From: Piromyces finnis finn
Lineage: Eukaryota; Fungi; Neocallimastigomycota
Reading direction: 5' to 3'
DNA length: 64,000 nucleotides
Assembly: GCA_002104945.1 (NCBI GenBank)
Contig: MCFH01000053.1
Span: 124,001 to 188,000 of the forward strand
The notes beneath the pieces were generated by a model. That model saw nothing but the letters and a program-made list of their open reading frames with translations, was not told the DNA's origin and ran no database searches. The translations under genes were made by a program, and so were the position numbers. This document shows, one piece after another, positions 28,665-34,598 of this stretch (positions are counted from its first letter, which is position 1; each line of letters begins with the position of its first letter).

Positions 28665-31565
28665 TTTTATTTATTTATTTATTATTTATTTATTATTTTT
28701 TATTTTATTTTATTTTATTCCTTTTCTTTTTTTCTTTTCTTTTCTTTCTTTCCTTCTTCTTCTTTTTTTTTTTTTAAATTATGTAAATTAATAAACAATA
28801 TAATAATTAATTAGAAGACATTATTAAATTTAGAATAATTTATTGAAATTAAAATAAAAATCTATATAAATGAAAAATTAAATGTTTATTTTTCTTTTTT
28901 TTTTTTTTCATTATTTTTTTTTCTTTTCTTTTCTTAGACCTACCTTTTATAATTATAAATATTAACTGTACTATATAGATAAATTTGAAATAATTTACTT
29001 TTTTTTTTTTTTTTTTTAATAGTTTATTGATTATATTATTATTATTATTATTTTTTAGTTTTTTAATTGATTATCTAATTTTTTTTCTATAATTCTTATA
29101 TATATTATGCTTATCTATATATATTAAGAATTGTTATTATTTATAATTATATATTTCAGATTTTGATTTAATCTTTTTATTTTTACTTTTATTATTCCTG
29201 TTATATATTGAACCTTTATTTTAATATTTAATCAAATTTATTGTAAAAATTTTAAATATACGCTTTTTTTTTTTTTCTAATTAATAATAAATATTAAAAA
29301 TTAAATTTAATATATTCTAATATATTTATTTATATAATAGTTTTTTTTATGATAAAGATGGTATATACATTTCATAAATAATTCTTATATATTAATAATA
29401 TATTAGATGCTTCTTCATATTCTTTTTTTTTTTTTTTTACTTTATTGGAAATAATTAATTAATATATGCTTTCAATAAAAGCAAATTATTTAAAATATGA
29501 CGCCAATAAATTGTAATATATCTTTAATTTAAATAAATTTTAATAATAAAACCTTCCTTAATAGGAATGTTTGATTTTATGTCGTACAATATCAATATCC
29601 GCAATAAAGAAAGAAAGAAAACATTAAGTTTTTTTTTAAAACATAATATTCTTTCTTTGAAATTTCATTTATTCATCTTGAATATTAATAATATAATATA
29701 ATAATTACATAATAATAAAAATAATATTAAATATTCAATAATTAATTATTAATTAACCCTTAAACTTTATCGTTATTATTTTAGATTTTATTTAAAAAAT
29801 TTAAAAGCCATGTCTAAAATGTTAGAAAAAAATCTTATTATTATTGTATTATTGTTTTTATTATTATTTTCGAATACCAATAATTTTATTACAATATATA
29901 AAATTTTATATTTTTGAAAAATGGTCAAACAATTTTTACTATTATTAACAAAAGTGTTAATATTCTTTTATATTTCAATAATATATTGAAATAAATTAAC
30001 AATTAAATTTATGTGATTCTAATTGTACAAGTAAACTTTTAACCAATCATATTTCAATTACACACATATTATATTGGCTATTTTTGGTACATTGTATTAA
30101 TATTGTAATAAATCATGTATAAATGGAAAAAATTACTTTGCAAAATTTAAAAGGAAAATAGGAAAATAGTTTTTAAATGTTAAATTATGTTTTTATATGT
30201 ATATATGTATATATTATAATATAAATACAATGACTAGATAATTATTATAAAGTATTTTCGATAAAAAAATAAAATTATATTAACATATAAAGATATGTTT
30301 AATGTAATATATTGAATAGTGAATTTAGTTATATATAGGTGATGCTTATATAAATTTAAAATTTAGTATTATTCCAATTTTCTATAGATGATGAAAAATA
30401 ATAATGACAATAAATTAAAATGCTAAAAAAAACTATATAAATTACTTTTTTTTTTTTAAGTTTTTTTTAAATGTCAAATTATTTTTTTTATGAAAATCAT
30501 TATTATTTTTCCTTTTAAACATTGGTAATTTATTGGTAAAAATTCAGATCAGTATAATATGTGGATTTTAATTTATTATTTTATTTTACAATTATTTTAA
30601 GATTAATATTATTAATGTAATAAATAAGAAATACAATAAGCTATATATTATTAATAATAAAACCTTTGTTAACATTAATAACCTATATAAATTCTATTAA
30701 AAAAAAAAAGTAAAAAATGAAAATGTATATTTTTGGTTTATAATAAGATAAATATTTTAAATGTATGCATTTTGATAATAAAAAAAACAATTTAATAGTT
30801 TATATATAAATAATTATTTATTATTGCTCATAGAAAATAGTATTATTTTGTTATTTTAAATATATATATATATAATTTAAATAGTTATATTATTTTCATT
30901 CAGACAGAAACATAAGAATAAGTTATATAATAATCCAATATATATATGGTATTATTTCTGATTTTATATAGAATCTATAATATTTAGTAAATATATTTTA
31001 AAAATAGATCAAGTGAATTTATAAGAATATTTTGAGTAAATAACTTTAAAATATTACAAAAAAACAAAATATTTTTACAAAGTATTTTATATTTATTACT
31101 AATAGAAAATAATTTAATATTTTAAAAAAAGGAAATCTATTCATGAATTTTCTCTTTTCAAATTATACTTTATAAATTTTCAAAAATTAAAACTAAATTG
31201 GAAATATTAATTTTATTTTTCTCCAAGTTATATACCATATACATATTACAATGTAATACAATATATTAATTAAAAATGTAATTTTAAATAGAAAAAGTAA
31301 TAATAATGTTTATGTTTTAAAAAACATAATATATTTTTATTAAATATTTACCTAATTTGTTTTTCTTATTTTTATATAGAAGCAATGAAAAGTTTATTTA
31401 TAAAAAGTATCTAAAAATCTTTATACAATATTATCTTTCATTATTCTAATATATGTTTTATTATAAGATTATAAAAAAGATAATTGTTATATCATATAAT
31501 AAAAATCATTATATAGTAAATTGTTATTAATAATTAAAATTTATATTTTAATTAAGAAAAACAAA

Positions 31566-31752
<187 letters not shown>

Positions 31753-31863
31753 CAATTTCTCTATAAATATATAATTTATTTTAAAAGGGAATTTTATTTT
31801 ATTTTTTTACTACTAAAATTATTTAATTATATATGATACACTACTATTTATAATCTTTTATTT

Positions 31864-33164: not shown

Positions 33165-33315
<151 letters not shown>

Positions 33316-33446: not shown

Positions 33447-34598
33447 ATGGGTGAATTTAAAGATATAAGAATTGTTGATAATTTTTATCAAACATCTTCT
33501 TTCTTTCCAATGCCAACAACATTAATTGGAACCATGGATGAAAATTTCGAGACTTCATTTGGAGCGTATTCCTTAGTTTTTCCATATTATATAGGTTCAA
33601 AAGAATTTTATGCAATGCTACTAGAATGTAGAAATTCCTCAAATACTTGTAAAAATCTTCTTCGACATGGTAAATGTACAATTAATTTTATGCCAGATAA
33701 TAAAAAATACTTTAAAGGAATTGTTGCTTTGGGTTATCCTGGTGATACTCCAGAACAAAAAAGAAAAACAAATATGTTCACCCCCGTAGACGGATTATTA
33801 CAAAAAGAAAAACCAGAAGGTAAATTTCCAAAAATATTAAATGAAGCATTTCAAGTTTTTGAATGTACCTGGTTAAAAGAACTTGATAATGCTCAGAATG
33901 ACGTAATTAAGGAAGAATATAATGGTCCTTATCATGATTTTAATGGTATAACAAGTCGATTTGGTGCCCATTTTATATTGAAAATAGAAAAAATATTGAT
34001 AAAAGAGAAGTATTGTAATGCCTTATTAAATGGTGTAAATAAAGATAATTTCCCTCCAATTCCAACAAATTTTGGTTATCGTGATTCCATTCATTTCTGG
34101 GAATCCCAATTTAAAAAGCCTTTTTACGAAAATATTCCTAAAAAAAATGTTGATATAGAATCAATTCGATATGCCGCAAATCGAGCAGATGATACTGTAA
34201 AATTTACAGATGAAGCTTTGGAAATGATTATTAATGTTCCACGTATATTCTTAAACACAGTTCTTAAAGGTTGTGTTAAATGGGCAAAAGAAAATAATGT
34301 CACATTAATTACTCCAGAAGAAATGAAGAAAATAAATGAAAAAAGTAGGAGTTCATAGTAGAAAGAAATAATGATAATAAAAGTTTTTTATTTATTGAAT
34401 TTAAATGAAATATATTAACTTTTTATTTTATTTTATAATTTTTTTTTTCGGGATTGTATAGGAAATAATCATAAATCATTATCTAGAAAATCAAACAATA
34501 ACGCGTTAGATTTCTGTAAATCACATTTAGTTTCCATATCAAGTATTGTTGTTTTTGTTGGTGTAGCAATTACTTTCTATATCAACAAATCTATATGA
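33447..34598 (+). CDS. Bacterial-type flavin-reductase-like (FMN split-barrel/flavoredoxin) protein with C-terminal PCP_red-like helical domain; probable second exon (34462-34598) adds a tail anchor
   Basis: FFPMPTTLIGT..SFGAYSL..CRNSSNTCKNLLRHGKCTINF..AFQVFECT fits the split-barrel flavin reductase pattern. KFTDEALEMIINVPRIFLNTVLKGCVKWAKENNVTLITPE fits the PCP_red pattern. The unspliced ORF ends at 34358. Intron 34345-34461 (GT..TATAG) extends the frame to TGA 34596-34598. Confidence 0.75.

Follow-up and report, generated by a model that had tools for sequence, protein, structure and literature searches.

The gene between positions 33447 and 34598 on the forward strand of the window, the 64,000-nt stretch of the Piromyces finnis genome that was analysed (contig MCFH01000053.1, positions 124,001 to 188,000), is best read as a two-exon gene of bacterial derivation, annotated as ORX43391.1, whose product carries the signature of a tail anchor. 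A C-terminal extension that preceded the intron is the more economical order of events, and we place the probability of the two-exon, tail-anchor reading as a whole at roughly 0.8. The exon encoding the tail is itself already known; what is new is the occurrence of intron-less, anchored homologues in rumen ciliates.

The entire window is extremely AT-rich, and the gene is flanked by DNA of 8-12% GC. Translation of the window gives a 303-aa open reading frame at 33447-34358 (+), and the frame that follows 34462 is the same one (Table 1). Joining the two at the GT/AG boundaries (exon-intron borders are marked here by a slash) restores the frame. The donor context is AAAAAA/GTAGGA, with the GT at 34345-34346, and the acceptor context is TGTATAG/GA, with the AG ending at 34461, such that the phase-1 intron splits an Arg codon, A/GA, after IN-E-K. 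The donor, the acceptor, the 117-nt interval, the TAG at 34356 and an alternative GT at 34351, all proposed in an earlier sequence-only reading, are found where that reading had placed them, and the spliced peptide it gave agrees with the translation of the 34462-34598 frame. Its description of an AT-rich intron and of coding-like GC in the exon is likewise borne out, with a GC content of 0.162 in the intron versus 0.255 in exon 2, 0.286 in exon 1 and 0.122 in the next 802 nt downstream. At the flanking base composition, 45 or more codons would stay open with a probability of ~3e-3 per frame, and the open exon-2 frame exceeds chance expectation. Nucleotide identity between exon 2 and the intron or 3' flank is uninformative in such AT-rich DNA. 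A pure (AAT)n microsatellite of ~140 nt occupies positions 33170-33310, some 140 nt upstream of the start codon, and a second AAT-type tract of similar composition at 31521-31766 gives poly-Asn and poly-Tyr open reading frames.

Table 1. Features of the P. finnis gene, in window coordinates
Feature	Position	Strand	Description
Exon 1 CDS	33447..34344	+	Residues 1-299 and base 1 of the split Arg codon; bacterial-derived core of predicted flavin-reductase-like fold
Phase-1 GT-AG intron	34345..34461	+	117 nt, GTAGGA...TGTATAG, GC 0.162
In-frame TAG within intron	34356..34358	+	Unspliced transcript would give a 303-aa product without the anchor
Exon 2 CDS	34462..34598	+	Last 2 bases of the Arg codon, 44 codons, TGA stop at 34596-34598
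Predicted transmembrane segment, 19 residues	34527..34583	+	P0001 residues 322-340; only strongly hydrophobic window of the protein
NKSI, 4 residues after the transmembrane segment	34584-34595	+	C-terminal end

The spliced product is represented throughout by the database protein P0001 (ORX43391.1; UniRef A0A1Y1UZP1), with the three bases of the split codon read together from the two exons. This protein, named "Flavin reductase like domain-containing protein" in UniRef, has 344 aa and consists exactly of exon 1, the Arg and the exon-2 peptide; exon 1 is 100% identical to its residues 1-299, and exon 2 corresponds to residues 300-344. The public P. finnis model therefore already uses the junction 34344/34462, and the exon cannot be called hidden, as it had been, given that the deposited protein is identical to the spliced product. 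The donor at 34351 (GTTCAT) was considered and rejected: it has no counterpart in the orthologues, whose donors, like the public model, align with 34345. In the orthologues the donors are GTAAGT, GTAAGA and GTAAAT, all closer to the canonical form than the GTAGGA of P. finnis.

Homologous loci in related anaerobic fungi contain an intron at the same site. In a Piromyces-like fungus belonging to the same 90% cluster as Piromyces sp. E2, genomic contigs (L189-L192) encode a 306-aa read-through product (P0123), and the contigs L187 (JGI 3300030527) and L188 (Logan SRR8270244) encode a product of 347 aa (P0124). By alignment, L187 and L188 equal the genomic contig L189 minus exactly 90 nt (GTAAGA...ATATAG), and their junction, GATAAAA/GAAAAAC, has the split Arg codon and the phase seen in P. 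finnis. The genomic contigs of a second fungus (L003-L008) contain c/GTAAGT...TATAG/gt, an interval missing from the cDNA-like contigs L001, L002 and L036, which continue directly into the transmembrane tail. Piromyces sp. E2 itself reads a/GTAAAT...TATATAG/ga at the corresponding site of its genomic contig (L009). The donor position, a TATAG/G acceptor and the split Arg codon are common to all four tailed fungal loci, and exon 2, at 137, 143, 146 and 143 nt over the four, differs in length by multiples of three only. Intron-less cDNA-like contigs with the homologous tail come from five datasets (L187, L188, L001, L002 and L036). It is the common intron position, together with such contigs in two relatives, that supports the P. 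finnis junction, and we infer that P. finnis itself splices 34345-34461; neither a word-based protein search nor a metagenome scan brought up a cDNA contig of P. finnis. The proposed exon and junction thus agree both with the public model and with relatives that splice the orthologous intron. If retained, the intron would yield predicted products of 301-306 aa, about the bacterial length, at the three loci where an unspliced product was called or read. In each of the four loci the orthologous intron has a length divisible by three (117, 168, 90 and 210 nt in the P. finnis window, L009, L189 and L003, respectively); triplet repeats may have slipped in this AAT/ATT-rich DNA, or the intron may derive from coding sequence that was in frame.

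The public model of the Piromyces sp. E2 locus (L009:3380-3808, KZ150748.1; OUM70546.1, P0002, 317 aa) has a second intron, caag/GTAATA...AATAG/at, and a protein end QDQKY. Read straight through, E2 exon 2 encodes a transmembrane tail that is a homologue of the P. finnis one, and the stretch equivalent to the second intron is kept in the cDNA-like contigs of the close relative (L187 and L188). The anchor is thus probably missing from the E2 model on account of a dubious second intron.

Conservation of the exon within the Neocallimastigomycota, which the sequence-only reading had named as a check, holds in part: the tail is present in four fungal loci, but the Neocallimastix copies lack it. In Neocallimastix californiae and N. 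lanati the protein has 303 aa and ends directly after RKKK, as annotated in three genomes. A GT is present at the homologous donor site (L010-L012:3390-3420, c/GTAAAA; the variant P0121 implies a/GT), and a search of open frames, hydropathy and GC islands within 2.5 kb downstream found no anchor exon, only low-complexity T-rich frames. Near position 3470 of L011, a hydrophobic frame that follows a possible acceptor is 10 residues long only. An island of 0.42-0.44 GC amid DNA of 5-15% GC lies further downstream of the Neocallimastix gene (L011:4550-4750) and is kept in N. lanati; its interpretation as a tRNA was rejected by ARAGORN. Because the Neocallimastix protein ends after RKKK without an anchor exon, some fungi can dispense with the anchor, which was either lost or never gained in this lineage. 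Two short fungal contigs (P0003, P0006) end before the tail region.

Exon 2 encodes a polar, partly basic linker, a moderately hydrophobic helix of 19 residues and a 4-residue end. The tail-anchor architecture suggested earlier was upheld by a hydropathy scan of P0001: the segment at residues 322-340 has a mean Kyte-Doolittle value of 2.39, the top six 19-residue windows all begin at residues 317-323, and no other window is comparable. The protein thus has the single C-terminal segment, followed by no more than ~30 residues, of a tail-anchored sequence, and the scan detected neither another hydrophobic segment nor an N-terminal signal peptide. The P. finnis segment contains three Ser, one Thr and one Gly, and AlphaFold2 models residues 290-343 as a helix. 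Over 4 fungal and 29 ciliate tails, the segment is 19-23 residues long with a mean Kyte-Doolittle value of ~2.3, the end after it comprises 1-13 residues and carries a net charge between 0 and +3, and most of the tails have a basic flank upstream. In the three fungal tails other than that of P. finnis, 21 residues make up the segment and 2-6 the end, whose net charge is +1 to +2; their upstream flanks are basic. Of the whole set, the tail of P. finnis is the least basic, with a net charge of 0 in its upstream flank and +1 in its end.

On these features the tail helix is predicted to be membrane-inserted. Moderate hydrophobicity and basic flanks are the pattern of mitochondrial, hydrogenosomal and peroxisomal anchors, although such tail signals do not reliably predict the organelle (PMC7446849); for this reason, and in view of its low basicity relative to the other tails, the P. 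finnis tail is not assigned to any one membrane. The protein resembles tail-anchored proteins such as yeast Fis1 and Gem1 and those of Trichomonas hydrogenosomes (PMC7446849) in its single C-terminal segment of ~20 residues, its moderate hydrophobicity, its very short end, the basic flanks of most orthologues and the absence of an N-terminal signal. It differs from them in that the cargo is a bacterial-derived enzyme of predicted flavin-reductase fold and the flanks in P. finnis are barely basic.

The core to which this tail is attached falls below the gathering cut-offs of Pfam, with 21.8 bits for DUF447_N versus 24 and 15.1 for Flavin_Reduct versus 27. NCBIfam returned no match for the protein, and searches of solved structures by sequence returned noise only, whether the query was the single protein or a 41-sequence profile. 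An AlphaFold2 model built from the 41-sequence alignment has a mean pLDDT of 80.5, and its top Foldseek matches are FMN-binding split-barrel flavin reductases, flavoredoxins and NbaA (E ~3e-6, target TM-score 0.6-0.69). Foldseek gave 79 PDB matches at E <= 0.001, and among the 50 matches listed almost all are flavin reductases, flavoredoxins or FMN-binding proteins. A flavin-reductase-like split-barrel fold of the core is thus supported by the model, the predicted fold of the first ~230 residues matching that of flavin reductase-like split-barrels (PF01613 Flavin_Reduct, PF04289 DUF447_N; 4z85 NbaA, 1eje, 3bnk, 2d5m flavoredoxin, 3e4v), and some sources label the bacterial homologues as members of the flavin reductase (DIM6/NTAB) family. 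The term flavoprotein, used in the sequence-only reading, is accordingly supported at the level of fold by Foldseek but not by Pfam, where the scores stay below threshold. The protein is unlike known flavin reductases in its sequence, which is 8-15% identical to theirs, in an extra helical C-terminal domain (~residues 237-300) and in the Cys residues C77, C140 and C276, which are invariant in the homologue alignment. His163 and His175 are also invariant there, and Cys61 is nearly so; this Cys/His set, unusual for flavin reductases, may point to a metal or redox-active site.

Homologues of the core number in the thousands. The bacterial ones have 305-311 aa, lack the tail and end INDKR-x-KEKKK; those with a named source belong to Anaeroplasmataceae, Anaeroplasma bactoclasticum, uncultured Mollicutes and many gut Clostridia and Bacilli, at 58-68% identity, and a metagenomic bacterial contig (L027) encodes one at 78%. 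A maximum-likelihood tree, built on the core with the tails removed, unites fungi and ciliates in a eukaryotic clade (support 99/94) that is nested among bacteria and has the bacterial protein P0013 as its sister (99/98). P0013 is encoded on a 109-kb contig beside hrcA-grpE-dnaK-dnaJ and MgtE genes. Elsewhere, too, the neighbourhoods of the bacterial homologues are unrelated and mostly housekeeping in content (thrS, gyrA, lepA, an ABC ATPase, a GNAT acetyltransferase), and no functional hint was found in them. In an uncultured Mollicutes MAG (L109) and on the P0013 contig (L193), the homologue has a BspA-type LRR_5 protein upstream and a GNAT acetyltransferase downstream, and these two neighbours in common hint at a Mollicutes-like donor lineage.

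Residence in eukaryotic DNA is indicated in P. finnis by the spliceosomal intron, the GC-poor flanks and a scaffold of 390,966 nt, and the ciliate copies, lying on telomere-capped chromosomes, are not contamination. Horizontal transfer of the gene from bacteria is well supported by the sequence comparisons, and the bacterial origin first proposed for the enzyme is confirmed insofar as the tree nests the eukaryotes in homologues of gut Mollicutes and Bacillota. Transfers from bacteria have been described both for mammalian gut fungi, for which 277 events are cited in PMC10978972, and for rumen ciliates (PMC1413528). The present gene resembles such cases in its nesting among gut Bacillota/Mollicutes, its AT-rich eukaryotic locus and its acquired intron; it is unlike earlier reports in that fungi and ciliates possess one and the same transferred gene, as a single clade, and that an anchor has been added in both. 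A literature search found no description of the gene, its tail or its presence in ciliates.

The ciliate homologues, 29 in number and 314-347 aa long, are encoded on contigs of ~1.1-2.1 kb. Those contigs that were checked are capped by (CCCCAAT)n/(GGGGATT)n and represent telomere-capped nanochromosomes; because the CCCCAAT repeat and gene-sized chromosomes are characteristic of rumen ciliates (10.1101/2022.01.05.474053), the 29 contigs are assigned to this group. Fungal transcripts had been considered as their source and were dropped on account of the telomere caps. An intron-less tail-anchored homologue with (CCCCAAT)n caps is found on contigs L017-L026, L028 and L031-L034, and L017 carries a second, N/K-rich open reading frame of 250 aa upstream on the same small chromosome. 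Each gene runs in one uninterrupted frame, without an intron, from the core through a basic linker and a segment of 19-23 residues to an end of 1-13 residues, which is basic in all but one of the 29. The fungal and ciliate tails have this architecture in common, and their sequences are not clearly alignable. The ciliates are monophyletic (100/98). In AU tests, fungal monophyly is not rejected (p-AU 0.48), and neither is a grouping of the fungi alone (p = 0.23) or of the ciliates alone (p = 0.145) with P0013. A single origin of the eukaryotic gene is favoured by the tree, not proven.

Several other explanations bear on exon 2 and its product. The exon might be an artefact of the P. finnis annotation: the mRNA would stop within the AT-rich DNA that follows the TAG at 34356, and its product would be a soluble 303-aa enzyme. 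The non-canonical GTAGGA donor and the annotated 303-aa form of Neocallimastix would fit such an arrangement. Against it stand 45 codons that stay open at coding-like GC, the splicing of a homologous exon in two relatives, and a transmembrane segment and 3n-only length differences kept over four loci; we regard it as highly improbable. Rather less remote, though still improbable, is an exon that is translated into a helix that does not span a bilayer, serving instead in oligomerisation or lying on the surface of a lipid droplet or, as a monotopic helix, of a membrane. The merely moderate hydrophobicity of the P. finnis segment and its Ser, Thr and Gly residues are compatible with this, but a length of 19-23 residues, an extreme C-terminal position and a short, mostly positive end are kept over 33 divergent tails. 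The upstream flank, moreover, remains basic in most tails while the sequence drifts, as expected of tail anchors under the rules given in PMC7446849.

The origin of the tail admits a further alternative, unlikely in our estimation yet more credible than the preceding two, namely that a new intron joined a non-coding downstream segment to a soluble enzyme and that the ciliate tails are the result of convergence. Such exon grafting would explain why each of the four tailed fungal loci encodes its tail in an exon of its own and why fungal and ciliate tails are alike in architecture but not clearly alignable, and the AU tests allow fungi or ciliates alone to group with P0013. The best tree nevertheless joins fungi and ciliates with the tail in both, and the ciliate tail is encoded without an intron. 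The fungal intron, furthermore, interrupts ancestral coding sequence at a point 6-10 codons short of the bacterial stop, and exon 2 of one fungus (L001, L003) starts with NKEK, which resembles the RNKEKKK at the C-terminus of the bacterial proteins. Since ciliate genes of this clade encode the architecture without a break in the frame, the tail probably predates the fungal intron or arose independently of it. The sequence-only reading had the enzyme domesticated by intron gain, which is doubtful when ciliates of the same clade possess the linker, the segment and the basic end with no intron at all.

The preferred reading, an extension that came before the intron, is favoured by the position of the intron inside the bacterial-homologous region, the NKEK start and the intron-less ciliates. 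Under it, a gene for a flavin-reductase-like split-barrel would have been acquired from a gut bacterium of Mollicutes/Bacillota type; the C-terminal extension would have been added first and the intron inserted afterwards in fungi, this being the more economical order. Once the protein is made, its helix would enter the membrane of an organelle or of the ER, with the enzyme held on the cytosolic side. A more specific history, which we advance tentatively and at somewhat less than even odds, is that the gene entered one rumen eukaryote, gained its anchor there and moved, already anchored, between fungi and ciliates, with the intron either inserted later at the core/tail boundary in fungi or lost in ciliates. 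Predation of ciliates on fungi is a plausible route for such a transfer (PMC7200989). If true, a gene would have passed from one eukaryote to another along with a targeting signal that it had newly evolved.

The steps by which transferred bacterial enzymes gain eukaryotic targeting information are rarely traceable. Four states are found here within one family: soluble bacterial parents, the tail-less proteins of Neocallimastix, tailed fungal proteins with an intron at the core/tail boundary, and tailed ciliate proteins without an intron. The family is thereby a compact natural series on the timing and manner in which a tail anchor and an intron are added, and it could show into which of its membranes an anaerobe with hydrogenosomes places such anchors.
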